From Cyanophora paradoxa CCMP329 (lineage: Eukaryota; Plantae; Glaucophyta), in NCBI GenBank assembly GCA_004431415.1, contig QPMI01000677.1, positions 1-20,127 of the forward strand: a stretch of DNA of 20,127 nucleotides, written 5' to 3'. The position numbers and the translations under genes are program-made. Below are positions 121 through 20,127 of this stretch, in pieces. Below the pieces are notes generated by a model that saw nothing but the letters and a program-made list of their open reading frames with translations, was not told the origin of the DNA and made no database searches. Every line of letters begins with the position of its first letter. Positions within the stretch are counted from its first letter, which is position 1.

Positions 121-3100
121 CTTTCCTCCCCAAAGAGTGTGCTCCTGGGGTCGACAATGCTGCGCAGTTCGGGCATAAGACACAAAAAAAAGCAGCGATC
201 GCTTGGCCAATGAGAAGGCGGTGGACGTCAAGCCCGCGGCGACCGTTAGAACTGAGAACCCAGAAAGCGATCGCCGGCCCAGCAGCTCTTTGTTAGAGGT
301 CGGACTCGCTGGGTATGGCGCCGAACCACAAAGCGATCGCCGAGCAATGAGAAGGCTCTATGCGCGGGGCAGATCTAGCGATCCAATTGAATAGGAATCT
401 CTATGCGAGCAAGCTCGCAGCGCTACGGGAGGCGGCACGCACTGCAGGCGTTGCGTTGGCTGGTGCGACGAACTTGAAGCAGCTCCTGCGCAAGCGATCG
501 CCGGTCAGAGAGCCTTCTCATCGCTCCGGCGATCGCTAGCCCTGGTACCGAGTACTGCGGGCGATCGCAGCAGCGCAACCGTCGGACGACGGACGCGGCG
601 CCGGCGATCGCTTGAAAAAGGCCCCGGCCAGATCCGAGCCCACGGCCGGCGGGCATAGTGCATAGTGCCAAAATTTCGCTCCGAAAACACGCTTTTTAGA
701 AGGATCGGAAGAAAGCGCCCAGGAGGTCCGAGGGGCGGTTCCGGGACGTACCTACTGACTCAGAGCTGCTTGCGCGGGCCCGCCGGCGACGCCATGGTTG
801 AGAGATCGAATCCTGCGCGCCGCCTTACAGCGGCCGAGGAAGGGGCGACGGCTGCAGAATTCGATGATGTGAACCTCGGACAAGCGAAGCGTGTAGCTAG
901 CGCGCCGCCGGCGCCGCGGTAGTGAGCCGATGAAGCGAGCGATGTGTACTCCTCGCGTGCGCGGGCGCGGCGAAGCGCCTGCGGGGCGGGCGTGGCGCCG
1001 CGGGGCTGAGCACGGCGCGCGCGCTGCGAAGCGCTATGCGCGAGCTTTTGCGCGAGCTTTGCGTCGACCCGCGCGCCTCACTTTCGAAGGTCGGGTACCC
1101 CCCGACTCATTCCCCCCTAAACTTGGGGGCTCGGTGGCTTAAAAGCGAAGGCTCTGGGGTACATCGACGAAATTTGACTTGCTCCACAAAATTGCAAGGC
1201 GCTCAAGAACTCTACGCTCACTGGAAGTTCAACTGCGGCCTACAAACTGCTTGCACCGCTCCACTAGCTCATCTAGTCTACCTGGGTCAGCAAACCGATC
1301 CTCCTCGGCCACTAGCGGCTTGCGGAACCATTCTTTCGCAACCGCAACAAATGGTGCGCAGTCCATTGGGCTGCGCTGGTGGTGCCCGAGCGCGCACCAC
1401 CCGCCATCGAGGCGAGAAAAGAATCTCGAGCACGCGGTCAGCTCGGCATCTTGCCTTGAAGATGGAGCCAGCGGTCGTGTGGAAGGTCATATCATGCACA
1501 GGCTCCGAGAGCTGAAGGAGGGCCTGCACTAATGCAGCGGCGTGACTCTTGATGGTGACTCTGCTCGTGATATATATGAGCTCGAGGCAATCAGCAAGAG
1601 TGGTTACTGATATCCATGGACAGAAAAAAGGAAACCACAAGTAGAAAAGGAAGAGGCGCGACGGCCAGTGGTCCCACTCGAGATTGGTGTGAAGCCCCGG
1701 AGGATAACCATTGTTGCCTCGGTGTTGTTCCCGGTACATCAAGCCGGTGCACTTGACTGGAGCGCTGCAGCGCGCGGCACCTTGCGTGGCCGTGCACTCC
1801 AGTGCACCGTCGTTTGGCGGTAGGCGAGCCAGCTTCTCGACGCACGTGCTGCGGGGCTCGCTGCCCTCGCGTCCCGTATCGCGGTTGCGACCACGGCGAT
1901 GCTCCCCCGTACCGATCTGGAGCCTCCTTCCTCCCGTGACATTGCAGGGAACCAGTGCAGTTTCGCCTTCAGGGTATTGCTCAGCGCGTTGAAGTATCGG
2001 TTTCTCGGTGTTCGCCACGCTGCGACGCGCCCAAGTCAGAGCACGTTCAGCGGGAGAAGGGAAATAAGAAGGAAAAGAAACAAAGGAAAAGAAAGAAAAG
2101 AGAAGGGGGTACGCGACCGTCTGTACAAGCAGGACAGGATGGGTGTCGGAATAGGCCGCTCAGGTGTGCCTAGCCATAGAGGCTTGTTTCGCCTCGTGTA
2201 TGGCGGGGCACATACGCCTCAACATCGATGTCCACATCGACCAATTGTCCCGCGCGTTTGGCTGAGTTTCTCGTGAGCTTGAGCATTTGCGATAACCGTT
2301 GCTCGTACCTGTTGGACTTTCCGTGTAGTTCTCCTGTATGCCGTCGCGCCGAGTTCGTCCACCTCGGGTACTCCTCTCCAGAGTCGTTGCCCCCATTCAG
2401 CATCCGGTGTGTTAGAACATCTGACTTGGAGCCCATCTGTTCCAGCACTGCAGCCACTTGCTTCAGAGCCTGAAAGCTGTTCTCCGCTGCGCGACCTGTA
2501 CCGTATTTCTCCTGCACCGGAATTAGAGTTCAGTAACCCCTTCTGTGGCGTCGTCTTCGTACCCCTCGCACGCACCGCCAGCTCTGCTTCATGCGCAGCC
2601 GGGTGAAGAGCTCGTTCGCCGGCGCTTCGTGGTGGAGAACGGCAGGGTTTCCCATTGCCTCGTGGCACGCCTGTGGAGAACGGCAGCGGTACGCGCATCA
2701 GCTCCACGTGTGGGGGGGGGGGTACGCGTAGCGAAGGGGGGGGGGGTTGGAGGGGGGGTAGTCGAACCTCCATTGGACTTGGCGCCTGTTCGGGAGCCGG
2801 GCCTGGGTCTTGACCTGCTTGCCGCGCGGCCTCCCACGCTGCTCGCGCCCGCCTTGCTTGCCGTGCTCCTCGTCGTCGAATGCCTTGGCTAGATCTACAA
2901 GGCCTTTGAATATGAGCTGGTTGGCAATTGTCGCCCACCGCCGAAAACGCGATTTGCGGACAAGGTCTGAGAAGATAATGCCGACTGATATGCTGCTTGC
3001 CGGCCCTGCAAGAAGGCGAAGAAGCTCCTTGCCGCTCTTCCGAACAGCCTGCAGGACCTGCACATCGCTTGCAATCTTGCCGCCACGACCGACATCCCTG

Positions 3101-5229
3101 TTGCCTCCGTACGCGTTGCACTTCCGAAGAAGCTTCTTCACCTCCGGGTACGACACGAGATCGTCCTGCGCCTTGCGCTTCCGCCCTTTCCCACGTGGCA
3201 ACTCTTCCACCAACGCGGCCTCTGCAGCTGCTGCTGCAAGCTCACACATGCATGAAGCCTGCGTCGCCATTGGTAAGAAAAAAACTTTACCCCCCCTCCG
3301 CCCCCCCCCCCCCCCCGGATGCATACCACAGCTGGAGTGATTCGCCTTCCCGTGTCTGCTGCTGTGCTGCGTGCACTGATTGAGCGAGACTGCGGAACTG
3401 GCCCTTCATTTCTTCCTTCGTGCCAAGGTACATTGCTTGCTGGCTGAGCCCGAGAGTCGCTTGCATACGCAGAAGGTTGATTTCAGACTGTCCGTTTGTG
3501 ACCTAATATAAAATTAAGAACATGTTACGAAAAGACAGAGCATGAAAGCATCGTGCACCTCCATGAAAGCATTTGCAAGACCTTGTCCCGTGCAGGCTCA
3601 CGGTCCAACTCAGCGTCTCCTGGCCGCAGGGCCAGAAGCTGTGTGAGCACAGCAGCAGCTGAGCGGATCTCGCCATCATCAGGGCTGCATCACATTTCGG
3701 TTTTCAAAATAGAATGCAGTGATTTGAAGGGGACGTACTGTAGAAATCGAGTGATGAATTGCTCGATCGCCCGTAGAAGAACACCTCTATCCAGAGCGAT
3801 AGGAACATCTTCGATTCAACAGCGTATGATCGTTTGTCATCGCTAGTACTTGTGTCATCCTTGCCCTCCTGAAAGTCCAGAGACAAGATGACCTGACCGG
3901 GCAGCAAGTAAGCAGAAGAAGCACGAGGCAAGCTGGCATGGACACGTGCCAGATCTATCTTCGCAGTCGTCTCTCACGGATGTAGATCTTGTTGGTATAG
4001 AAGCTCGTCACCCGGCCTTTAGCCAGTCGTAGTGCCTGGCTCGAAGGTCCGTATCCACTGCAAACTCACCGTGCGCCCCTGGCACGCCAAGGCCCAGAAA
4101 TGCACACTGTGCCTGCAGTGAGTGCCGTGCTTCAACTGGCCAGAAGATAGATGCTTACGTCCATATCAATGAGCTCATCGAGTTGAGAAGAGCTTGAGGT
4201 ATCTTCCTTGTCGCCAGCAGCTATATCAGCATCTGGATGAGGGTCGGGACCGGTGCGCTGAAGGCTTGGCGATTCGAGTGCGACCTAAATGCAGTATCTC
4301 ATGGCGAATCTCAAGCTAAAGAAGATCGAGGACGCACAGTGCTCATGAAGTGCTTCAGAGCATGGAGATCCTCCAGTGTCCGTGTCCGGTTCTTTGCTGG
4401 TTCACCTCGAAACTGCAACCGACAAGCGTTCGCCTGAGCTTGCCGAGCCGCTTCTGTCACCTGGATAAGTTGGTCTTAGATTCCATTCGATCAATTCTTT
4501 GAGCTGCAGAGCACCTCATCAAGCCAATCAACACAACTCTGAAATTTGGGGCCTCGAAACGCTCCCTTTGTGCCCACAAACAGGTTGCGCAGTGCACGCA
4601 AGCATCTGGCAGGGGGCAGGTCGACGATGATGTCCTCCACATAATGCACTTGGGGGTCCAGATCTGCAAACATGATAAGACAAAGAGGCGGCGTGCAGAT
4701 TTCACAGAGAAACGCACAGATCTCGAAGGGTGCATGTGCTTGTCGCCTTCTGCCAGCGCACCAGCGTCGCGCCCGCTGCGCCGTCCAGGGCGCCACCCGC
4801 CGCGCCGCCTCCGTGCGTCCGCGCGCCCCTCCCGCGCCGCCTCCGCGCCTCCGCGCCGCCTCCCGCGCCGCGCACCGGGCCGGGGGAGGGGAGGGACAGG
4901 GCCGGGGGGGGCGGCCCGGGGGAGGGGCGGGGCCGGGGGAGGGACGGGCCGGGGGAGGGCGGGGCGGGGAGGGGGGGGGGCCGGCGGGGAGGGCGGGCCG
5001 GGGGGAGGGCGGGCCGGGGGAGGGCGGGGCCCGGGGGAGGGCGGGGCCGGGGGAGGGGCGGGGGGGGGGGGGGAGGGGCGGCCCGGGGAGGGCGGGCCGG
5101 GGGAGGGCGGGCCCGGGGGGAGGGCGGCCGGGGGAGGGACGGGCCCGGGGGAGGGCGGGCCCGGGGAGGGACGGGCCCGGGGGAGGGGCGGGGCCGGGGG
5201 AGGGGCGGGCCCGGGGGAGGGAGGGCGGG
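17..5229. repeat. Tandem unit copy 1 (~5.21 kb; one copy of the internal 151 bp repeat)
   Basis: Anchor GACAAGCTCAAGGCCGGAGCC recurs at 17, 5230, 10542 and 15880, and the intervening sequence is colinear and near-identical. The unit phase is arbitrary. Confidence 0.97.
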
Positions 5230-5333
5230 GACAAGCTCAAGGCCGGAGCCGCCCCCGAGGCCGCCCACGAGGCCACCACCCGCCGCGCGGCCCGCCAGAA
5301 GGGGTTGGGAGATGAGCTGGAGGTCCACTCCAT
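1218..5333 (-). CDS. Multi-exon gene (~15 exons) for a ~1,050 aa protein of unknown function; Pro/Gly-rich N-terminus, basic NLS-like PRGKGRKRK
   Basis: Manual splicing of the copy consensus gives one open frame from ATG (MEWTSSSSPNPLLAGR, 5333) to TGA (...VGPQLNFQ*, 1218). Introns in + coordinates: 4664-4717, 4461-4514, 4285-4337, 4113-4158, 3893-3949 (GC-AG), 3809-3864 (GC-AG; or 3809-3849 GT-AG), 3685-3738, 3503-3558, 3259-3326, 2671-2767, 2512-2575, 2020-2117, 1849-1912, 1561-1662. Donors include GTGCGT, GTAAGC, GTACGT and GTATGC; acceptors are mostly YAG. In-frame stops shared by all copies fall inside these introns. The start codon and in-frame introns are less certain. Confidence 0.8.
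4878..5230 (+). repeat. G-rich ~18 bp minisatellite (GGGGGAGGG(G/A)CGGG(G/C)CC-like) encoding PPPGP(A/V) on the minus strand
   Basis: Visible tandem G-run units, also at ~10208-10542 and ~15485-15880. The copy 3 translation gives PPPGPAPPPGPVPPPGPA. Confidence 0.9.
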
Positions 5334-8300
5334 CTCTTCCTCCCCAAAGAGTGTGCTCCTGGGTCGACATGCTGCGCAGTCGGGCATAAGACACCGAAAA
5401 GCAGCGATCGTTGGCCATGAGAAGGCGGGACGTCAAGCCCGCGGCGACCGTAGAACTGAGAACCCAGAAGCGATCGCCGGCCCAGCAGCTCTTTGTAGAG
5501 GTCGGACCGCTGGGTATGGCGCCGAACACAAAGCGATCGCCAGCAATGAGAGGCTCTATGGCGGGGCAGATCTAGCGATCCAATGAATAAGAATCTCTAT
5601 GCGAGCAAGCTCGCAGCGCTACGGGAGGCGGGCACGCACTGCAGGGTTGGCGTTGGCTGGGCGACGAACTTGAAGCAGCTCCTGCGCAAGCGATCGCCGG
5701 TCAGAGCGCGGGGCAGATCTAGCGATCCAATTGATAGAGAATCTCTATGCGAGCAAGCTCGCAGCGCTACGGGAGGCGGGCACGCACTGCAGGCGTTGGC
5801 GTTGGCTGGTGCGACGAACTTGAAGCAGCTCCTGCGCAAGCGATCGCCGGTCAGAGAGCCTTCTCATCGCTCCGGCGATCGCTAGGCCCTGGTACCGAGT
5901 ACTCCGGGCGATCGCCAGCGCGAAACCGCGGACGACGGACGCGGCGCGGCGATCGCTTGAAAAAGGCCCGGCCAGATCCGAGCCACGGCCGGCGGCATAG
6001 TGAACATAGTGCCAAATTCGCTCCGAAAAACACGCTTTTTAGAAGGATCGGAAGAAAGCGCGCCAGGCAGGTCCGAGGGCGGTTCCGGACGTACCTACTG
6101 ACTCAGAGCTGCTTGCGCTGGGCCCGCGGCGACGCCATGGTTGAGAGATCGAATCCCTGCGCGCCGCCTTACACGGCCGAGGAAGGGGCGACGGCTGCAG
6201 AATTCGATGATGTGAACCTCGGACAAGCGAAAGCGTGAGCTAGCGCGCCGCCGGCGCCGCGGGTGAGCCGATGAAGCGAGCATGTGTACTCCTCGCGTGC
6301 GGGCGCGGGAAGTCGCCTGCGGGGCGGCGTGGCGCCGCGGGGCTGAGCACGGCGCGCGCGCTGCGAAGCGCTATGCGCGAGCTTTGCGCGAGCTTTGCGT
6401 CGACGCCGCGCCTCACTTTCGAAGGTCGGGGTACCCCCCGACTCATTCCCCCCTAAACTTGGGGGCTCGGTGGCTTAAAAGCGAAAGCTCTGGGTACATC
6501 GACGAAATTTGACTTGCTCCACAAAATTGCAAGCGCTCAAGAACTCTACGCTCACTGGAAGTTCAACTGCGGCCCTACAAACTGCTTGCAACCGCTCCAC
6601 TAGCTCATCTAGTCTACCTGGGTCAGCAAACCGATCCTCCTCGGCCACTAGCGGCTTGCGGAACCATTCTTTCGCAACCGCAACAAATGGTGCGCAGTCC
6701 ATTGGGCTGGCTGGTGTGCCCGCGCATACCACCCGACCCCATCGAGGCGAGAAAAGAATCTCGAGCACGCGGTCAGCTCGCATCTTGCCTTGAAGATGGA
6801 GCAGCGGTCGTGTGGAAGGTCATATCATGCACAGGCTCCGAGAGCTGAAGGAGGGCCTGCACTAATGCAGCGGCGTGACTCTTGATGGTGACTCTGCTCG
6901 TGATATATATGAGCTCGAGGCAATCAGCAAGAGTGGTTACTGATATCCATGGACAGAAAAAAGGAAACCACAGTAGAAAAAGGAAGAGGCGCACGGCCAG
7001 TGGTCCCACTCGAGATTGGTGAAGCCCCGGAGGATAACCATTGTTGCCTCCGGTGTTGTTCCCGGTACATCAAGCCGGTGCACTTGACTGGAGACGCTGC
7101 AGCGCGCGCACCTTGCGTGGCCGTGCACTCCAGTGCACCGTCGTTTGGCGGTAGCGAGCCAGCTTCTCGACGTACGCACGTGCTGCGGGGCTCGCTGCCC
7201 TCGCGTCCCGTATCGCGGTTGCGACCACGGCGATGCTCCCCCGTACGATCTGGAGCCTCCTTCCTCCCGTGACATTGCAGGGAACCAGTGCAGTTTTCGC
7301 CTTCAGGGTATGCTCAGCGCGTTGAAGTATCGGTTCTCGGTGTTCGCCACGCTGCGACGCGCCCAAGTCAGAGCACGTTCAGCGGAGAAGGGAAATAAGA
7401 AGGAAAAGAAACAAGGAAAAGAAGAAAAGAGAAGGGGGGTACGCGGACCGTCTGTACAAGCAGGACAGGATGGGTGTCGGAATAGGCGCTCAGGTGTGCC
7501 TAGCCATAGAGGCTTGTTTCGCCTCGTGTATGGCGGAGGCACATACGCCTCAACATCGATGTCCACATCGACCAATTGTCCCGCGCCGTTTTGGCTGAGT
7601 TTCTCGTGAGCTTGAGCATTTGCGATAACCGTTGCTCGTACCTGTTGGACTTTCGTGTAGTTCTCCTGTATGCCGTCGCGCCGAGTTCGTCCACCTCGGG
7701 TACTCCTCTCCAGAGTCGTTGCCCCCATTCAGCATCCGTGTGTTAGAAAATCTGACTTGGAGCCCATCTGTTCAGCACTGCAGCCACTTGCTTCAGAGCC
7801 TGAAAAGCTGTTCTCCGCTGCGCGACCTGTACCGTATTTCTCCTGCACCGGAATTAGAGTTCAGTAACCCCTTCTGTGGCGTCGTCTTCGTACCCCTCGC
7901 ACGCACCGCCAGCTCTGCTTCATGCGCAGCCGGGTGAAGAGCTCGTTCGCCGGCGCTTCGTGGTGGAAGAACGGAGGGTTTCCCCATTGCCTCGTGGCAC
8001 GCCTGTGGAGAACGGCAGGGTACGCGCATCAGCTCCACGTGTCGGGGGGGGGGGGTACGCGTAGCGAAGGGGGAGGGGGGTTGGAGGGGGGGTAGTCGAA
8101 CCTCCATTGGACTTGGCGCCTGTTCGGGAGCCGGGCCTGGTCTTGACCTGCTTGCGCCGCCTCCCACGCTGCTCGCGCCCGCCTTGCGTTGCCGTGCTCC
8201 TCGTCGTCGAATGCCTTGGCTAGATCTACAAGGCCTTTGAATATGAGCTGGTTGGCAATTGTCGCCCACCGCCGAAAACGCGATTTGCGGACAAGGTCTG

Positions 8301-8618
8301 AGAAGATAATGCCGACTGATATGCTGCTTGCCGGCCCTGCAAGAAGGCGAAGAAGCTCCTTGCCGCTCTTCCGAACAGCCTGCAGGACCTGCACATCGCT
8401 TGCAATCTTGCCGCACGACCGACATCCCTGTTGCCTCCGTACGCGTTGCACTTCCGAAGAAGCTTCTTCACCTCCGGTACGACACGAGATCGTCCTGCGC
8501 CTTGCGCTTCCGCCCTTTCCCACGTGGCAACTCTTCCACCAACGCGGCCTCTGCAGCTGCTGCTGCAAGCTCCACACATGCATGAAGCCTGCGTCGCCAT
8601 TGTAAAAAAAAAAACTTT

Positions 8619-8649
<31 letters not shown>

Positions 8650-10541
8650 ATGCATACCACAGCTGGAGTGATTCGCCTTCCCGTGTCTGCTGCTGTGCTG
8701 CGTGCACTGATTGAGCGAGACTGCGGAACTGGCCTTCATTTCTTCCTTCGTGCCAAGGTACATTGCTTGCTGGCTGAGCCCGAGAGTCGCTTGCATACGC
8801 AGAAGGTTGATTTCAGACTGTCCGTTTGTGACCTAATATAAAATTAAGAACATGTTACGAAAGAACAGAGCATGAAGCATCGTGCACCTCCATGAAAGCA
8901 TTTGCAAGACCTTGTGCCCGTGCAGGCTCACGGTCCAACTCAGCGTCTCCTGGCCGCAGGGCCAGAAGCTGTGTGAGCACAGCAGCAGCTGAGCGGATCT
9001 CGCCATCATCAGGGCTGCATCAACATTTCGGTTTTCAAAATAGAATGCAGTGATTTGAAGGGGACGTACTGTAGAAATCGAGTGATGAATTGCTCGATCG
9101 CCCGTAGAAGAACACCTCTATCCAGAGCGATAGGAACATCTTCGATTCAACAGCGTATGATCGTTTGTCATCGCTAGTACTTGTGTCATCCTTGCCCTCC
9201 TGAAAGTCCAGAGACAAGATGACCTGACCGGCAGCAAGTAAGCAGAAGAAGCACGAGGCAAGCTGCATGGACACGTGCCAGACTATCTCTCGCAGTCGTC
9301 TCTCACGGATGTAGATCTTGTTGGTATAGAAGCTCGTCACCCGGGCCTTTAGCCAGTCGTAGTGCCTGGCTCGAGGTCGTATCCACTGCAAACTCACCGT
9401 GCGCCCCTGGCACGCAAAGCCCAGAAATGCACACTGTGCCTGCAGTGAGTGCCGTGCTTCAACTGGCCAAGATAGATAGATGCTTACGTCCATATCAATG
9501 AGCTCATCGAGTTGAGAAGAGCTTGAGGTATCTTCCTTGTCGCCAGCAGCTATATCAGCATCTGGATGAGGGTCGGGACCGGTGCGCTGAAGGCTTGGCG
9601 ATTCGAGTGCGACCTAAATGCAGTATCTCATGGCGAATCTCAAGCTAAAGAAGATCGAGGACGCACAGTGCTCATGAAGTGCTTCAGAGCATGGAGATCC
9701 TCCAGTGTCCGTGTCCGGTTCTTTGCTGGTTCACCTCGAAACTGCAACCGACAAGCGTTCGCCTGAGCTTGCCGAGCCGCTTCTGTCACCTGGAAAGTTG
9801 GTCTTAGATTCCATTCGATCAATTCTTTGAGCTGCAGAGCACCTCATCAAGCCAATCAACACAACTCTGAAATTTGGGGCCTCGAAACGCTCCCTTTGTG
9901 CCCACAAACAGGTTGCGCAGTGCACGCAAGCATCTGGCAGGGGGCAGGTCGACGATGATGTCCTCCACATAATGCACTTGGGGGTCCAGATCTGCAAACA
10001 TGATAAGACAAAGAGGCGGCGTGCAGATTTCACAGAGAAACGCACAGATCTCGAAGGGTGCATGTGCTTGTCGCCTTCTGCCAGCGCCACCAGCGTCGCC
10101 GCCCGCTGCGCCGTCCAGGCGCCACCCGCCGCGCCGCCTCCGTGCCGCCTCCCGCGCCGCCTCCCGCCGCCTCCGCGCGCCTCCGCGCCGCCTCCCGCGC
10201 CGCGCACCGGGCCGGGGGAGGGGAGGACAGGGCCGGGGGGGGCGGGCCCGGGGGAGGGCGGGGCGGGGGAGGGACGGGCCCGGGGAGGGGCGGGGCCGGG
10301 GGAGGGGGCGGGGGAGGGCGGGCCCGGGGGAGGGGCGGCCCGGGGGAGGGCGGGCCCGGGGGAGGGGGCGGGGGAGGGGGGGGCGGGGAGGGGCGGGCCC
10401 GGGGAGGGGGGGCCCGGGGGAGGGGCGGGCCCGGGGAGGCGGCCGGGGGAGGACGGGCCCGGGGAGGGCGGGCCCGGGGGAGGGACGGGCCCGGGGGAGG
10501 GCGGGCCGGGGGAGGGGCGGGGCCCGGGGGAGGGAGGGCGG
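5230..10541. repeat. Tandem unit copy 2 (~5.31 kb)
   Basis: Colinear with the other copies; differences are mostly 1-nt homopolymer indels. Confidence 0.97.
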
Positions 10542-10645
10542 GACAAGCTCAAGGCCGGAGCCGCCCCCGAGGCCGCCCACGAGGCCACCACCCGCCGCGC
10601 GGCCCGCCAGAAGGGGTTGGGAGATGAGCTGGAGGTCCACTCCAT
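6552..10645 (-). CDS. Copy 2 of the same multi-exon gene
   Basis: Same exon/intron structure as 1218-5333; private frameshifts are homopolymer-type read errors. Confidence 0.8.
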
Positions 10646-10850
10646 CTCTTCCTCCCAAAGAGTGTGCTCCTGGGTCGACATGCTGCGCAGTCGGGCATAA
10701 GACACCGAAAAGCAGCGATCGCTTGGCCAATGAGAAGGCGGTGGACGTCAAGCCCGCGGCGACCGTTAGAACTGAGAACCCAGAAGCGATCGCCGGCCCA
10801 GCAGCTCTTTGTTAGAGGTCGGACTCGCTGGGTATGGCGCCGAACACAAA

Positions 10851-11208
10851 GCGATCGCCGAGCAATGAGAAGGCTCTATGCGCGGGGCAGATCTAGCGAT
10901 CCAATTGAATAGAGAATCTCTATGCGAGCAAGCTCGCAGCGCTACGGGAGGCGGGCACGCACTGCAGGCGTTGGCGTTGGCTGGTGCGACGAACTTGAAG
11001 CAGCTCCTGCGCAAGCGATCGCCGGTCAGAGCGCGGGGCAGATCTAGCGATCCAATTGAATAGAGAATCTCTATGCGAGCAAGCTCGCAGCGCTACGGGA
11101 GGCGGGCACGCACTGCAGGCGTTGGCGTTGGCTGGTGCGACGAACTTGAAGCAGCTCCTGCGCAAGCGATCGCCGGTCAGAGAGCCTTCTCATCGCTCCG
11201 GCGATCGC
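10851..11208. repeat. 27/28 bp inverted repeat pair enclosing the 151 bp repeats
   Basis: Left arm 10851-10877 is GCGATCGCCGAGCAATGAGAAGGCTCT. The reverse complement of the right arm 11181-11208 is GCGATCGCCGGAGCGATGAGAAGGCTCT (1 gap, 1 mismatch). Present in every unit. Confidence 0.9.
10880..11181 (+). repeat. 151 bp direct tandem repeat, two copies
   Basis: 10880-11030 equals 11031-11181 (GCGCGGGGCAGATCTAGCGATCC...GCGATCGCCGGTCAGA). Also two copies at ~5560-5855 and 16221-16522, but only one at ~362-509. Confidence 0.95.
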
Positions 11209-11751
11209 TAGGCCTGGTACGAGTACTCCGGGCGATCGCCAGCGCGAACCGTCGGACGACGGACGCGGCGCCGGCGATCGCTTGAAAAAGGCCCCGGCCA
11301 GATCCGAGCCCACGGCCGGCGGGCATAGTGAACATAGTGCCAAAATTTCGCTCCGAAAACACGCTTTTTAGAAGGATCGGAAGAAAGCGCGCCAGGCAGG
11401 TCCGAGGGCGGTTCCGGACGTACCTACTGACTCAGAGCTGCTTGCGCTGGGCCGCCGGGCGACGCCATGGTTGAGAGATCGAATCCCTGCGCGCCGCCTT
11501 ACAGCGCGGAAGGGCGACGGCTGCAGAATTCGATGATGTGAACCTCGGACAAGCGAAAGCGTGTAGCTAGCGCGCCGCCGGCGCCGCGGGTGAGCCGATG
11601 AAGCGAGCGATGTGTACTCTCTCGTGCGCCGGGCGCGGCGAAGTCGCCTGCGGGGCGGGCGTGGCGCCGCGGGCTGAGCACGGCGCGCGCGCTGCGAAGC
11701 GCTATGCGCGAGCTTTGCGCGAGCTTTGCGTCGACGCGCGCGCCTCACTTT

Positions 11752-11884: not shown

Positions 11885-14800
11885 TCACTGGAAGTTCAAC
11901 TGCGGCCCTACAAACTGCTTGCACCGCTCCACTAGCTCATCTAGTCTACCTGGGTCAGCAAACCGATCCTCCTCGGCCACTAGCGGCTTGCGGAACCATT
12001 CTTTCGCAACCGCAACAAATGGTGCGCAGTCCATTGGGCTGCGCTGGTGGTGCCCGGCGCATACCACCCGACCCCATCGAGGCGAGAAAAGAATCTCGAG
12101 CACGCGGTCAGCTCGGCATCTTGCCTTGAGATGGAGCAGGTCGTGTGGAAGGTCATATCATGCACAGGCTCCGAGAGCTGAAGAGGGCCTGCACTAATGC
12201 AGCGGCGTGACTCTTGATGTGACTCTGCTCGTATATATATGAGCTCGAGGCAATCAGCAAGAGTGGTTACTGATATCCATGGACAGAAAAAAGGAAACCA
12301 CAAGTAGAAAAAGGAAGAGGCGCACGGCCAGTGGTCCCACTCGAGATTGGTGAAGCCCCGGAGGAACCATTTGCCTCCGGTGTTGTTCCCGGTACATCAA
12401 GCCTGCACTTGACTGGAGACGCTGCAGCGCGCGGCACCTTGCGTGGCCGTGCACTCCAGTGCACCGTCGTTTGGCGGTAGGCGAGCCAGCTTCTCGACGT
12501 ACGCACGTGCTGCGGGGCTCGCTGCCCTCGCGTCCCGTATCGCGGTTGCGACCACGGCGATGCTCCCCCGTACCGATCTGGAGCCTCCTTCCTCCCGTGA
12601 CATTGCAGGGAACCAGTGCAGTTTCGCCTTCAGGTATTGCTCAGCGCGTTGAAGTATCGGTTCTCGGTGTGTTCGCCACGCTGCGACGCGCCCAAGTCAG
12701 AGCACGTTCAGCGGGAAAGGGAAATAAGAAGGAAAAGAAACAAAGGAAAAGAAAGAAAGAGAAGGGGGGTACGCGACCGTCTGTACAAGCAGGACAGGAT
12801 GGGTGTCGGAATAGGCCGCTCAGGTGTGCCTAGCCATAGAGGCTTGTTTCCTCGTGTATGGCGGAGGCACATACGCCTCAACATCGATGTCCACATCGAC
12901 AATTGTCCCGCGCCGTTTGGCTGAGTTTTTCTCGTGAGCTTGAGCATTTGCGATAACCGTTGCTCGTACCTGTTGGACTTTCCGTGTAGTTCTCCTGTAT
13001 GCCGTCGCGCCGAGTTCGTCCACCTCGGGGTACTCCTCTCCAGAGTCGTTGCCCCCATTCAGCATCCGTGTTGACGCTTAGCACCTGTACCTGTATTTCT
13101 CCTGCACCGGAATTAGAGTTCAGTAACCCCTTCTGTGGCGTCGTCTTCGTACCCCTCGCACGCACCGCCAGCTCTGGCTTCATGCGGCCGGGTGAAGAGC
13201 TCGTTCGCCGGCGCTTCGTGGTGGAGAACGGCAGGGTTTCCCATTGCCTCGTGGCACGCCTGTGGAGAACGGCAGGGTACGCGCATCAGCTCCACGTGTC
13301 GGGGGGGGGGGGGGTACGCGTAGCGAAGGGGGGGGGGGGGGGGGGGGGGGTAGTCGAACCTCCATTGGACTTGGCGCCTGTTCGGGAGCCGGGCCTGGGT
13401 CTTGACCTGCTTGCCGCGCGGCCTCCCACGCTGCTCGCGCGCCGCCTTGCGTTGCCGTGCTCCTCGTCGTCGAATGCCTTGGCTAGATCTACAAGGCCTT
13501 TGAATATGAGCTGGTTGGCAATTGTCGCCCACCGCCGAAAACGCGATTTGCGGACAAGGTCTGAAGATAATGCCGACTGATATGCTGCTTGCCGGCCCTG
13601 CAAGAAGGCGAAGAAGCTCCTTGCCGCTCTTCCGAACAGCCTGCAGGACCTGCACATCGCTTGCAATCTTGCCGCCACGACCGACATCCCTGTTGCCTCC
13701 GTACGCGTTGCACTTCCGAAGAAGCTTCTTCACCTCCGGGTACGACACGAGATCGTCCTGCGCCTTGCGCTTCCGCCCTTTCCCACGTGGCAACTCTTCC
13801 ACCAACGCGGCCTCTGCAGCTGCTGCTGCAAGCTCCACACATGCATGAAGCCTGCGTCGCCATTGGTAAGAAAAAAACTTTACCCCCCTCCGCCCCCCCC
13901 CCCCCCCCGGATGCATACCACAGCTGGAGTGATTCGCCTTCCCGTGTCTGCTGCTGTGCTGCGTGCACTGATTGAGCGAGACTGCGGAACTGGCCCTTCA
14001 TTTCTTCCTTCGTGCCAAGTACATTGCTTGCTGGCTGAGCCCGAGAGTCGCTTGCATACGCAGAAGGTTGATTTCAGACTGTCCGTTTGTGACCTAATAT
14101 AAAATTAAGAACATGTTACGAAAAGACAGAGCATGAAAGCATCGTGCACCTCCATGAAAGCATTTGCAAGACCTTGTGCCCGTGCAGGCTCACGGTCCAA
14201 CTCAGCGTCTCTCCTGGCCGCAGGGCCAGAAGCTGTGTGAGCACAGCAGCAGCTGAGCGGATCTCGCCATCATCAGGGGCTGCATCACATTTCGGTTTTC
14301 AAAATAGAATGCAGTGATTTGAAGGGGACGTACTGTAGAATCGAGTGATGAATTGCTCGATCGCCCGTAGAAGAACACCTCTATCCAGAGCGATAGGAAC
14401 TCTTCGATTCAACAGCGTATGATCGTTTGTCATCGCTAGTACTTTGTGTCATCCTTGCCCTCCTGAAAGTCCAGAGACAAGATGACCTGACCGGGCAGCA
14501 AGTAAGCAGAAGAAGCACGAGGCAAGCTGGCATGGACACGTGCCAGATCTATCTCTCGCAGTCGTCTCTCACGGATGTAGATCTTGTTGGTATAGAAGCT
14601 CGTCACCCGGCCTTTAGCCAGTCGTAGTGCCTGGCTCGAAGGTCCGTATCCACTGCAAACTCACCGTGCGCCCTGGCACGCCAAGGCCCAGAAATGCACA
14701 CTGTGCCTGCAGTGAGTGCCGTGCTTCAACTGGCCAAGATAGATAGATGCTTACGTCCATATCAATGAGCTCATCGAGTTGAGAAGAGCTTGAGGTATCT

Positions 14801-15984
14801 TCCTTGTCGCCAGCAGCTATATCAGCATCTGGATGAGGGTCGGGACCGGTGCGCTGAAGGCTTGGCGATTCGAGTGCGACCTAAATGCAGTATCTCATGG
14901 CGAATCTCAAGCTAAAGAAGATCGAGGACGCACAGTGCTCATGAAGTGCTTCAGAGCATGGAGATCCTCCAGTGTCCGTGTCCGGTTCTTTGCTGGTTCA
15001 CCTCGAAACTGCAACCGACAAGCGTTCGCCTGAGCTTGCCGAGCCGCTTCTGTCACCTGGATAAGTTGGTCTTAGATTCCATTCGATCAATTCTTTGAGC
15101 TGCAGAGCACCTCATCAAGCCAATCAAACAACTCTGAAATTTGGGGCCTCGAAACGCTCCCTTTGTGCCCACAAACAGGTTTGCGCAGTGCACGCAAGCA
15201 TCTGGCAGGGGGCAGGTCGACGATGATGTCCTCCACAATAATGCACTTGGGGGTCCAGATCTGCAAACATGATAAGACAAAGAGGCGGCGTGCAGATTTC
15301 ACAGAGAAACGCACAGATCTCGAAGGGTGCATGTGCTTGTCGCCTTCTGCCAGCGCCACCAGCGTCGCCGCCCGCTGCGCCGTCCAGGGCGCCACCCGCC
15401 GCGCCGCCTCCCGTGCCGCCTCCCGCGCCGCCTCCCGCGCCGCCTCCCGCGCCGCCTCCCGCGCCGCCTCCCGCGCCGCGCACCGGGCCGGGGGGAGGGG
15501 GAGGGACAGGGCCGGGGGGGGGGCGGGCCCGGGGGAGGGGCGGGGCCGGGGGAGAGGACGGGCCCGGGGGGAGGGGCGGGGCCGGGGGGGGGGGGGGGGG
15601 GGGGGGGGGCGGGGGGGAGGGCGGGCCCGGGGGGGGGCGGGCCCGGGGGGAGGGGCGGGGCCCGGGGGGAGGGGCGGGGCCGGGGGAGGGGGGGGGGGCG
15701 GGGGGAGGCGGGCCCGGGGGAGGGGCGGGCCCGGGGGGAGGGGCGGGCCCGGGGGGAGGGGCGGGGCCGGGGGGAGGGACGGGCCCGGGGGGAGGGGCGG
15801 GCCCGGGGGGAGGGACGGGCCCGGGGGGAGGGGCGGGGCCGGGGGGAGGGGCGGGGCCCGGGGGAGGGGGAGGGGCGGGGACAAGCTCAAGGCCGGAGCC
15901 GCCCCCGAGGCCGCCCACGAGGCCACCACCCGCCGCGCGGCCCGCCAGAAGGGGGTTGGGAGATGAGCTGGAGGTCCACTCCAT
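11885..15984 (-). CDS. Copy 3 of the same multi-exon gene
   Basis: Same structure. ORF 15124..16092 reads exon 1 intact (MEWTSSSS...PPPGPA repeats...AGGG repeats...AHAPFEI). ORF 11885..12103 is the end of the last exon. Confidence 0.8.
15402..15478 (+). repeat. 12 bp tandem repeat (GCCGCCTCCCGC)n encoding AGGG repeats on the minus strand
   Basis: About 6 units in copy 3; degraded by read errors at ~4803-4870 and ~10131-10203. Confidence 0.85.
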
Positions 15985-18900
15985 CTCTTCCTCCCCAAAG
16001 AGTGTGCTCCTGGGGTCGACATGCTGCGCAGTCGGGCATAAGACACCGAAAAGCAGCGATCGCTTGGCCAATGAGAAGGCGGTGGACGTCAAGCCCGCGG
16101 CGACCGTTAGAACTGAGAACCCAGAAGCGATCGCCGGCCCAGCAGCTCTTTGTTAGAGGTCGGACTCGCTGGGTATGGCGCCGAACACAAAGCGATCGCC
16201 GAGCAATGAGAAGGCTCTATGCGCGGGGCAGATCTAGCGATCCAATTGAATAGAGAATCTCTATGCGAGCAAGCTCGCAGCGCTACGGGAGGCGGGCACG
16301 CACTGCAGGCGTTGGCGTTGGCTGGTGCGACGAACTTGAAGCAGCTCCTGCGCAAGCGATCGCCGGTCAGAGCGCGGGGCAGATCTAGCGATCCAATTGA
16401 ATAGAGAATCTCTATGCGAGCAAGCTCGCAGCGCTACGGGAGGCGGGCACGCACTGCAGGCGTTGGCGTTGGCTGGTGCGACGAACTTGAAGCAGCTCCT
16501 GCGCAAGCGATCGCCGGTCAGAGAGCCTTCTCATCGCTCCGGCGATCGCTAGGCCCTGGTACCGAGTACTCCGGGGCGATCGCCAGCGCGAACCGTCGGA
16601 CGACGGACGCGGCGCCGGCGATCGCTTGAAAAAGGCCCCGGCCAGATCCGAGCCCACGGCCCGGGCATAGTGAACATAGTGCCAAAATTTCGCTCCGAAA
16701 ACGCTTTTTAGAAGGATCGGAAGAAAGCGCGCCCAGGCAGGTCCGAGGGCGGTTCCGGGACGTACCTACTGACTCAGAGCTGCTTGCGCTGGGCCCGCCG
16801 GGCGACGCCATGGTTGAGAGATCGAATCCCTGCGCGCCGCCTTACAGCGGCCGAGGAAGGGCGACGGCTGCAGAATTCGATGATGTGAACCTCGGACAAA
16901 GCGAAAGCGTGTAGCTAGCGCGCGCCGGCGCCGCGGGTGAAGCCGATGAAGCGAGCGATGTGTACTCCTCGCGTGCGCGGGCGCGGCGAAGTCGCCTGCG
17001 GGGCGGGCGTGGCGCCGCGGGGCTGAGCACGGCGCGCGCGCGCGCTGAAGCGAACGCTATGCGCGAGCTTTGCGCGAGCTTTGCGTCGACGCCGCGCGCC
17101 TCACTTTCGAAGGTCGGGGTACCCCCCCGACTCATTCCCCCCTAAACTTGGGGCTCGGTGGCTTAAAAGCGAAGGCTCTGGGGTACATCGACGAAATTTG
17201 ACTTGCTCCACAAAATTGCAAGGCGCTCAAGAACTCTACGCTCACTGGAAGTTCAACTGCGGCCCTACAAACTGCTTGCACCGCTCCACTAGCTCATCTA
17301 GTCTACCTGGGTCAGCAAACCGATCCTCCTCGGCCACTAGCGGCTTGCGGAACCATTCTTTCGCAACCGCAACAAATGGTGCGCAGTCCATTGGGCTGCG
17401 CTGGTGGTGCCCGGCGCATACCACCCGACCCCATCGAGGCGAGAAAAGAATCTCGAGCACGCGGTCAGCTCGGCATCTTGCCTTGAAGATGGAGCCAGCG
17501 GTCGTGTGGAAGGTCATATCATGCACAGGCTCCGAGAGCTGAAGGAGGGCCTGCACTAATGCAGCGGCGTGACTCTTGATGGTGACTCTGCTCGTGATAT
17601 ATATGAGCTCGAGGCAATCAGCAAGAGTGGTTACTGATATCCATGGACAGAAAAAAGGAAACCACAAGTAGAAAAAGGAAGAGGCGCACGGCCAGTGGTC
17701 CCACTCGAGATTGGTGAAGCCCCGGAGGATAACCATTGGTTGCCTCCGGTGTTGTTCCCGGTACATCAAGCCGGTGCACTTGACTGGAGACGCTGCAGCG
17801 CGCGGCACCTTGCGTGGCCGTGCACTCCAGTGCACCGTCGTTTGGCGGTAGGCGAGCCAGCTTCTCTCGACGTACGCACGTGCTGCGGGGCTCGCTGCCC
17901 TCGCGTCCCGTATCGCGGTTGCGACCCACGGCGATGCTCCCCCGTACCGATCTGGAGCCTCCTTCCTCCCGTGACATTGCAGGGAACCAGTGCAGTTTCG
18001 CCTTCAGGGTATTGCTCAGCGCGTTGAAGTATCGGTTCTCGGTGTTCGCCACGCTGCGACGCGCCCAAGTCAGAGCACGTTCAGCGGGAGAAGGGAAATA
18101 AGAAGGAAAAGAAACAAAGGAAAAGAAAGAAAAGAGAAGGGGGGTACGCGGACCGTCTGTACAAGCAGGACAGGATGGGTGTCGGAATAGGCCGCTCAGG
18201 TGTGCCTAGCCATAGAGGCTTGTTTCGCCTCGTGTATGGCGGAGGCACATACGCCTCAACATCGATGTCCACATCGACCAATTGTCCCGCGCCGTTGTGG
18301 CTGAGTTTCTCGTGAGCTTGAGCATTTGCGATAACCGTTGCTCGTACCTGTTGGACTTTCCGTGTAGTTCTCCTGTATGCCGTCGCGCGCGAGTTCGTCC
18401 ACCTCGGGGTACTCCTCTCCAGAGTCGTTGCCCCCATTCAGCATCCGGTGTGTTAGAACATCTGACTTGGAGCCCATCTGTTCCAGCACTGCAGCCACTT
18501 GCTTCAGAGCCTGAAAGCTGTTCTCCGCTGCGCGACCTGTACCGTATTTCTCCTGCACCGGAATTAGAGTTCAGTAACCCTTCTGTGGCGTCGTCTTCGT
18601 ACCCCTCGCACGCACCGCCAGCTCTGGCTTCATGCGCAGCCGGGTGAAGAGCTCGTTCGCCGGCGGCTTCGTGGTGGAGAACGGCAGGGTTTCCCATTGC
18701 CTCGTGGCACGCCTGTGGAGAACGGCAGGGTACGCGCATCAGCTCCACGTGTCGGGGGGGGGGGGGGTACGCGTAGCGAAGGGGGAGGGGGGGTTGGAGG
18801 GGGGGGGTAGTCGAACCTCCATTGGACTTGGCGCCTGTTCGGGAGCCGGGCCTGGGTCTTGACCTGCTTGCCGCGCGGCCTCCCACGCTGCTCGCGCCCG

Positions 18901-20127
18901 CCTTGCGTTGCCGTGCTCCTCGTCGTCGAATGCCTTGGCTAGATCTACAAGGCCTTTGAATATGAGCTGGTTGGCAATTGTCGCCCACCGCCGAAAACGC
19001 GATTTGCGGACAAGGTCTGAGAAGATAATGCCGACTGATATGCTGCTTGCCGGCCCTGCAAGAAGGCGAAGAAGCTCCTTGCCGCTCTTCCGAACAGCCT
19101 GCAGGACCTGCACATCGCTTGCAATCTTGCCGCCACGACCGACATCCCTGTTGCCTCCGTACGCGTTGCACTTCCGAAGAAGCTTCTTCACCTCCGGTAC
19201 GACACGAGATCGTCCTGCGCCTTGCGCTTCCGCCCTTTCCCACGTGGCAACTCTTCCACCAACGCGGCCTCTGCAGCTGCTGCTGCAAGCTCCACACATG
19301 CATGAAGCCTGCGTCGCCATTGGTAAGAAAAAAAAACTTTACCCCCCTCCGCCCCCCCCCCCCCCCCCCGGATGCATACCACAGCTGGAGTGATTCGCCT
19401 TCCCGTGTCTGCTGCTGTGCTGCGTGCACTGATTGAGCGAGACTGCGGAACTGGCCCTTCATTTCTTCTCCTTCGTGCCAAGGTACATTGCTTGCTGGCT
19501 GAGCCCGAGAGTCGCTTGCATACGCAGAAGGTTGATTTCAGACTGTCCGTTTGTGACCTAATATAAAATTAAGAACATGTTACGAAAAGACAGAGCATGA
19601 AAGCATCGTGCACCTCCATGAAAGCATTTGCAAGACCTTGTGCCCGTGCAGGCTCACGGTCCAACTCAGCGTCTCCTGGCCGCAGGGCCAGAAGCTGTGT
19701 GAGCACAGCAGCAGCTGAGCGGATCTCGCCATCATCAGGGGCTGCATCACATTTCGGTTTTCAAAATAGAATGCAGTGATTTGAAGGGGACGTACTGTAG
19801 AAATCGAGTGATGAATTGCTCGATCGCCCGTAGAAGAACACCTCTATCCAGAGCGATAGGAACATCTTCGATTCAACAGCGTATGATCGTTTGTCATCGC
19901 TAGTACTTGTGTCATCCTTGCCCTCCTGAAAGTCCAGAGACAAGATGACCTGACCGGGCAGCAAGTAAGCAGAAGAAGCACGAGGCAAGCTGGCATGGAC
20001 ACGTGCCAGATCTATCTCTCGCAGTCGTCTCTCACGGATGTAGATCTTGTTGGTATAGAAGCTCGTCACCGGGCCTTTAGCCAGTCGTAGTGCCTGGCTC
20101 GAAGGTCCGTATCCACTGCAAACTCAC
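15880..20127. repeat. Tandem unit copy 4 (partial, runs off the window)
   Basis: Colinear with about positions 17-4070 of copy 1, plus a second 151 bp repeat. Confidence 0.97.
17242..20127 (-). CDS. Copy 4 of the same gene, 3' part (5' end outside the window)
   Basis: ORFs 17242..17835, 18739..19320 and 19761..20069 overlap exons of the reconstructed gene. Confidence 0.78.

Follow-up and report, generated by a model that had tools for sequence, protein, structure and literature searches.

A head-to-tail array of 5.3-kilobase units carrying an intron-rich gene in Cyanophora paradoxa

Gene arrays that undergo concerted evolution, such as those of histone, 5S and ribosomal DNA genes and the gene arrays of dinoflagellates and trypanosomatids, encode abundant housekeeping products. 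A second kind of large tandem unit is the subtelomeric Y' element of yeast, which is 5-7 kilobases (kb) long, carries one large open reading frame (ORF), is homogenized by recombination and can be amplified. Here we describe an array of 5.3-kb units in Cyanophora paradoxa CCMP329, a glaucophyte. Glaucophytes are one of the three lineages with primary plastids, and their nuclear genome is thinly annotated. The analyzed stretch, hereafter the window, comprises 20,127 nucleotides (positions 1 to 20,127 of contig QPMI01000677.1, assembly GCA_004431415.1). We consider it probable that the window is part of a nuclear head-to-tail array in which each unit holds a conserved, spliced gene belonging to a taxonomically restricted family.

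From general knowledge, and with no claim of homology, the window unit resembles Y' elements in being repeated head-to-tail, in occurring at several loci and in having one large gene per unit. Y' elements differ in encoding a recognizable helicase and in abutting telomere repeats, whereas the window unit has no helicase or P-loop signature and the window contains no telomere repeat of the TTAGGG or TTTAGGG type. The array shares with other arrays under concerted evolution its near-identical, head-to-tail units, each with one gene and one spacer. However, those arrays encode products of known function, while this one encodes an apparently lineage-restricted protein from a gene with 13 introns.

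Unit structure and differences among copies

The base composition of the window was periodic at about 5.3 kb, exact 24-mers recurred at anchors 15, 5228, 10540 and 15878, and long direct repeats were spaced 5.26-5.46 kb apart. Therefore, the window consists of 3.75 copies of one 5.3-kb unit arranged head-to-tail, with both contig ends inside units. The copies diverged by approximately 2% substitutions and by many single-nucleotide indels. Differences were mostly private to a single copy, as was the case for 133 of 143 substitution columns and 503 of 527 indel columns. Homopolymer context accounted for 54% of the indel columns, and deletions predominated over insertions when copies were compared to their majority. 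Such differences are typical of a long-read consensus that has not been polished, and not of diverged repeats.

Every copy in the window was frameshifted and none had all of its exons intact. At nearly every damaged site, some other copy retained the frame that is conserved in homologues. A plain majority consensus repaired all but about six sites, with deletion errors persisting where two copies had the same short homopolymer. Choosing the longer homopolymer was suggested as a fix by tests at exons 5 and 8. In exon 5, one base is missing near 4014 in copy 1 while copy 2 is in frame, and homopolymer lengths vary among the copies. The start of exon 8 requires CCCC at 3684, and there are four C in copies 3 and 4 but three in copies 1 and 2. 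We infer that the copy-to-copy frameshifts are long-read consensus errors rather than decay. The contig represents a class left unpolished, for which any reading based on ORFs requires a consensus tolerant of deletion errors.

The gene, its homologues and its product

The 5.3-kb unit carries a real, spliceosomal, intron-rich protein-coding gene, one per unit, on the minus strand. A preliminary description of the first unit had proposed a hidden protein of about 1,050 residues, assembled from pieces between positions 1218 and 5333 by removing 14 short introns. All of its peptide pieces were located on the minus strand of this interval and recurred in the other three units, and no single ORF covers the gene, as had been stated. 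Our revised model (Table 1) has 14 exons and 13 introns of 47-102 nucleotides, with about 3,290 coding bases and approximately 1,095 residues. The proposed size was thus accurate, in that the spliced gene has about 1,050-1,100 codons. Donors were GT at 12 of the 13 introns and GC at the remaining one, and all 13 acceptors were AG. These boundaries restore one frame provided that the longer homopolymer variants of some copies are used.

The mutual consistency of splice phases had been offered in favor of the original chain. While a chain that restores the frame does exist, the GC-rich DNA of the window has stop-free stretches of 100-340 codons in every frame. When we enumerated the GT/GC...AG pairs that preserve the frame, there were dozens of alternatives per junction, so phase consistency is no evidence by itself.

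More telling was a collinear homologue on a 3,338-nucleotide genomic contig from Logan (L001), which covers the gene from the last codons of exon 1 through the stop codon. Comparison of the window to L001 with tblastx gave a sum E-value of 2e-143, with 40-60% amino acid identity in exons and unaligned gaps at introns. Identity across 555 aligned codons was 0.60, 0.68 and 0.36 at the first, second and third codon positions, respectively. The sampled introns (1, 2, 6' and 8) scored 1 to 3.5 standard deviations over shuffled controls, with 6' and 8 at about 3 and the other two near the controls. Judging from these alignments, the family is under purifying selection at the protein level.

L001 requires introns at places matching all 13 introns of the revised model. 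Exact sites and phases were compared for introns 1-5, 6', 8 and 9, and the same site and phase could be read in both sequences for introns 1-4, 6', 8 and 9, including intron 1 (phase 1 in both, after the same two residues, E-I, that end the Pro-rich exon), intron 6' (phase 1) and intron 9 (phase 2). Introns 10, 11, 12', 12 and 14 are demanded in L001 by frame changes or stops, and the same junctions occur in EukProt gene models. Because conservation is confined to exons and intron positions are conserved, the comparison indicates that the family has long been maintained as a protein-coding gene.

L001 begins within the Pro-rich exon 1. Its last base (3338) corresponds to the last base (1017) of L003, a contig from a different run, and both lie 15 nucleotides past the stop codon. 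Both ends have the look of repeat boundaries at which the assembly broke, in which case the homologue could be multi-copy in that organism as well.

We searched for further relatives using separate exons or stored database proteins as queries. The exon 10 region, used as a word-search query, matched a C. paradoxa EukProt (EP00741) model at 61% identity. The 90% cluster of this first match, together with a second search, yielded ten models on at least eight contigs that represent one sequence with differing mis-spliced ends. We refer to this second array type as family B, which is about 55-60% identical to the window array type (family A). The family B models (P0001-P0011, including tig00020920_g15915-7, tig00000403_g293 and tig00020849_g14661) share the architecture of exons 10-15. 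They are 45-61% identical to the 3' half of the window protein and near-identical to each other on many contigs, and three adjacent models stand on one contig. Family B differs in being a separate subfamily in which every model starts within exon 10, with the 5' half unannotated or unretrieved. When P0003 and P0005 were used as tblastn queries, the window gene was covered from exon 10 to the stop codon at 45-75% identity per exon. P0003 removes by splicing a 54-residue stretch that P0005 retains. This junction is suspect because both the window and L001 conserve the 54 residues, and it is probably an annotation artifact or an alternative isoform.

Fragment models of family A carry the exact window sequence on at least eight further contigs. 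These models, P0012 (tig00021682_g23091) and the P0013 and P0014 clusters, match window exons 11-13 and use identical junctions between exons 10/11, 11/12, 12a/12b and 12b/13. They differ from the window gene in that they are fragments of 66-240 residues ending in frameshifted junk, and none has the 5' half or the full protein. Nevertheless, their presence in the public EukProt set contradicts the notion that the protein is revealed only by splicing the window. Paralogues of the window gene were found on more than 15 contigs.

A distant paralogue (P0018/P0029; tig00000881_g5231.t2/.t1) is a Cyanophora protein of 799/821 residues. It has an LRLLAGP block, the exon 6' block, a W-D-H motif and a C-terminal Cys/His cluster in the same order as the window protein. 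It differs in having only 25-43% identity within the conserved blocks and in being without the Pro/Gly-rich N-terminal exon. Unlike the window gene, it was observed at a single locus, with two isoforms, and not in an array.

Searching 1.84 billion cluster representatives with a profile built from family B and the window exons returned 11 proteins, comprising Cyanophora models, three Logan ORFs (SRR31724264, SRR31724265) and one repetitive ENA protein. No relative outside Cyanophora and the three Logan ORFs was obtained from this search if the ENA match is, as is probable, spurious. That protein (P0017; 1,321 residues in units of about 35 residues) matched the profile with an E-value of 1e-12 over 18 stretches, probably as a repeat-driven false match. 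Neither metagenome contigs nor IMG/VR contigs yielded relatives in pattern-based scanning for the C-terminal block. As far as these searches reach, the protein family is restricted to Cyanophora and one other sequencing project (SRR31724264, SRR31724265). The label of orphan is nonetheless inappropriate, since the family comprises two subfamilies in tandem arrays and a dispersed paralogue, and another project contains homologues. We found no paper on these arrays or on the two runs in the literature searched.

Viewed against the paralogues and L001, the original spliced-gene model was about 85% right. Support was obtained for 13 of its 15 exon peptides and 12 of its 14 introns. Two introns were wrong and one had been missed. 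The former exon 7 was in the wrong frame, since exon 6 keeps its own frame over 51 codons, and these are conserved in L001 and P0018. The former intron 6 was superfluous and, like intron 5, starts with GC rather than GT. The frame of the resulting exon 6' is conserved in L001 (871-999) and in residues 139-193 of P0018, and the exon is identical in copies 1, 2 and 4. The exon terminates in phase 1 before a GTACGT donor, in agreement with L001, and joins exon 8 through a GTACGT...GCAG intron. The former exon 14 likewise started out of frame. Exons 13 and 14 constitute a single exon (13'), the counterpart of which is one uninterrupted ORF in L001 (2569-2925), and P0005 is in frame there with 64-75% identity. 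What had been a single exon 12 contains an overlooked intron of about 47-51 nucleotides. The poly-C, poly-G and pyrimidine tracts outside exon 1 do fall in introns, as had been claimed, specifically introns 9, 10 and 12.

The Pro/Gly-rich first exon was also retained. It measures 616, 600 and 670 nucleotides in copies 1, 2 and 3 (4718-5333, 10046-10645 and 15315-15984), and all three frames are nearly open across it. Exon 1 is coding because its end and phase-1 intron are conserved in L001, although the contig does not fix its start codon, repeat frame or repeat number. The length variation of its Pro/Gly-rich repeats could reflect either genuine changes in repeat number or long-read error in DNA with 87% GC.

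Table 1. Coordinates of features in the window. Exons and intron 5 are those of gene copy 1 in the revised model.
Feature	Position	Strand	Remarks
Gene copy 1	1218..5333	minus	Contains the pieces of the preliminary description
Gene copy 2	6552..10645	minus	
Gene copy 3	11885..15984	minus	
Gene copy 4	17242..20127	minus	Cut inside exon 5 by the contig end; fewest errors of the four copies
Exon 1	4718..5333	minus	ATG at 5333; Pro/Gly/Ala-rich low-complexity tract, 87% GC; phase-1 end before GTGCGT donor
Exon 2	4515..4663	minus	Same translation in copies 1 and 2; 40% amino acid identity to L001 73-201; donor GTGCTC, acceptor TTTGCAG
Exon 3	4338..4460	minus	Same in copies 1-3; C-terminal part and phase-0 donor position match L001
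Exon 4	4159..4284	minus	Same in copies 1-3; end and GTAAGC donor match L001 GTGAGC at homologous residue
Exon 5	3950..4112	minus	52% amino acid identity to L001 630-722, homology extending to 821
Intron 5	3893..3949	minus	57 nucleotides, GC-AG, in frame, stop-free; GC donor in three copies
Exon 6'	3739..3892	minus	51 codons and 1 nucleotide; supersedes former exon 6, intron 6 and exon 7
Exon 8	3559..3684	minus	Phase-1 intron at same residue in L001
Exon 9	3327..3502	minus	Ends in TG before GTATGC donor, phase 2; homologous L001 exon ends in TG before GTAAGC
Exon 10	2768..3258	minus	About 164 codons; basic GKGRKRK patch and most conserved block of the family (LRLLAGP); amino acid identity 61% to P0003, 49% to L001 1452-1862, 43% to P0018 342-394
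Exon 11	2576..2670	minus	Junctions on both sides also used by EukProt models P0012 and P0014
Exon 12a	2309..2511	minus	GTACGA donor; junction used by P0013 and demanded in L001 by frame change and stop
Exon 12b	2118..2261	minus	51-77% identity to L001 and P0003; donor GTCGCG, phase 2
Exon 13'	1663..2019	minus	About 120 codons; former exon 13, an in-frame stretch and end of former exon 14 (EWDHWP)
Exon 15	1218..1560	minus	Stop codon 1218-1220; Cys/His cluster C-x2-[HC]-H-x6-C; 56-61% identity to P0003, 59% to L001
Spacer	5334..6551	minus	Presumed promoter and 5' untranslated region of copy 1 and 3' untranslated region of copy 2; about 1.2 kb
Spacer tandem duplication	5561-5856, 10880-11182, 16221-16523		

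Four features are conserved family-wide: the GKGRKRK-type basic patch with which exon 10 begins, the LRLLAGP block, the EWDHWP motif and the C-terminal C-x2-[HC]-H-x6-C cluster. The basic patch, which resembles a nuclear localization signal (NLS), had been the reason for suggesting a nuclear protein. Both family B and L001 conserve this patch, P0018 has a weaker one (KRAR), and the nuclear location is plausible on this basis. From the four conserved features, we infer that the product is a nuclear, mainly helical protein and that the C-terminal Cys/His cluster probably binds zinc. The Pro/Gly-rich N-terminus would be disordered. Binding of nucleic acid or chromatin is a guess that we would sooner expect to be wrong than right.

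That no family could be assigned was borne out by every database consulted. Pfam returned only sub-threshold noise for ten exon pieces and for P0003, P0018, P0029, P0015, P0016 and P0019. Searches of NCBIfam and PHROGs likewise gave noise, and there was no match in the PDB at an E-value of 1, either by profile or by sequence. Structure prediction had been proposed as a check. AlphaFold2 gave mostly helices, with a predicted local distance difference test (pLDDT) score of 36 for P0003 (12-row alignment) and 53 for the exon 10 block (6 rows). These models were too poor to use, so no fold search was made. In several MAFFT alignments short exon fragments were misplaced, and the rows concerned were left out. 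Leads from the ESM Atlas for P0003 (DUF6698, DUF6532 and a phage cluster) had low recognition value, were unconfirmed by Pfam and were not repeated with P0018.

Explanations for the array

Under the explanation we favor, the similarity of the units would be due to recent amplification or to concerted evolution through unequal crossing-over or gene conversion. Transcription of each unit would start from the region upstream of it, where GCGATCGC palindromes are dense and a CCAAT-like box is present. The encoded product would be a mainly helical nuclear protein with a disordered N-terminus, an NLS-like patch and a zinc-binding Cys/His cluster. Several points weigh against this explanation. The support for transcription and for the exact junctions comes from homology and from public gene models of ungraded evidence. 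The frame of exon 1 from the ATG at 5333 is kept in just two of three copies. Intron 5 could be a GC-AG intron, but it could also be coding sequence that is retained, as L001 has a 49-nucleotide GT-AG intron at this place and P0018 aligns weakly across it. Frameshifts are present in all copies of the window, and their status as errors is presumed rather than proven. Neither contig end reaches unique DNA, so the chromosomal position is not fixed. Finally, no domain, fold or distant relative indicates a function, and AlphaFold2 confidence was low throughout.

The rival explanations differ in how they account for the gene. If there were no gene, the peptide chain would be pieced together from frames that happen to be open in GC-rich DNA, as might be imagined from the numerous alternative GT-AG chains that stay open and from the three open frames across exon 1. 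The collinear, exon-limited homology to L001, P0003/P0005 and P0018 and the pattern of identity by codon position refute this possibility, leaving it a negligible probability. It is also very unlikely that the array is a decaying, gene-derived satellite with real frameshifts, in which the window copies are pseudogenes and working members lie elsewhere. Such a satellite would account for the several frameshifts and stops in the exons of every window copy and for public gene models of the family all being fragments. However, the differences are 95% copy-private, mostly single-nucleotide deletions and half in homopolymers, which is the pattern of uncorrected long-read error. Moreover, nearly every damaged site is in frame in another copy, as in homologues, and the majority consensus mends all but the few sites mentioned above.

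Another possibility, which we consider unlikely, is that the unit of 5.3 kb is a selfish element. It could represent a novel type of DNA transposon, or else an amplicon that amplifies itself or is extrachromosomal. The single gene would then serve the element's own spread or upkeep, with arrays as a by-product. Many contigs consist of the array alone, there are two homogeneous subfamilies, the family is restricted to one lineage and the spacer contains inverted pairs of 19-26 nucleotides, all of which a selfish element could explain. The same is true of the common break in L001 and L003, which resembles a repeat boundary, and of a weak language-model likeness to the basidiomycete families DUF6698 and DUF6532. 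Yet Pfam, NCBIfam, PHROGs and the PDB revealed no transposase, integrase, Rep, helicase or polymerase signature. The two basidiomycete families were unrecovered by Pfam even at an E-value of 1, and a second atlas query was empty. The inverted pairs are built of GCGATCGC and the CCAAT-like box in a motif-rich upstream region, and are equally readable as a promoter. Furthermore, 13 shared intron positions at 50% identity and a dispersed full-length paralogue better suit an old host family. A more specific version posits an undescribed autonomous selfish amplicon, with the LRLLAGP and Cys/His nuclear protein driving or maintaining tandem or extrachromosomal amplification and the GCGATCGC field acting in cis as the site for this. 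The amplicon would then have two lineages, families A and B, and P0018 would be a domesticated or ancestral host copy. We regard this version as distinctly unlikely.

Whichever explanation applies, the family fills many contigs as near-identical arrays of 5.2-5.4-kb units, yet the public proteome has only broken fragments of it. Gene counts and orphan statistics are distorted because the family is present there in this form. What is new here is the structure of the family, a collinear homologue in which the introns are conserved, and the corrected 14-exon model, which together with the member list make the protein testable. The array also invites the question of why a protein that is specific to one lineage and carries a nuclear-type signal should be maintained at a very high copy number, for which dosage, concerted evolution and selfish amplification are candidate answers.

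The spacer between gene copies

The GCGATCGC palindrome, which is the cyanobacterial HIP1 octamer, occurs eight times per spacer and 30 times in the window, compared to an expectation of 0.83. All 30 sites are located about 70-640 nucleotides upstream of an ATG (195-611, 5470-5956, 10715-11281 and 16056-16625). Extended AAGCGATCGCCGG forms of the motif share one direction and then flip near 11185. The spacer also has a CCAAT-like box, and its inverted pairs, composed of the self-complementary GCGATCGC motif and this box, are 81-89% complementary and 287-462 nucleotides apart. Between the inverted motif pairs lies a tandem duplication, which is an exact 151 base pairs (bp) or, in the first unit, 148 bp at 96% identity. 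We read the spacer as promoter architecture rather than transposon ends, although this is not proven.

Rfam returned nothing at the gathering score for the window, with one sub-threshold match to snoZ206 in the spacer. No tRNA was found in the window, and a scan for bacterial promoters and terminators was uninformative. A 15-nucleotide exact match, GAGAAGGCTCTATGC, links the window spacer (10867-10881) to positions 2925-2939 of contig L002, approximately 700 nucleotides downstream of a distant homologue, and may be a shared regulatory or unit-boundary motif.

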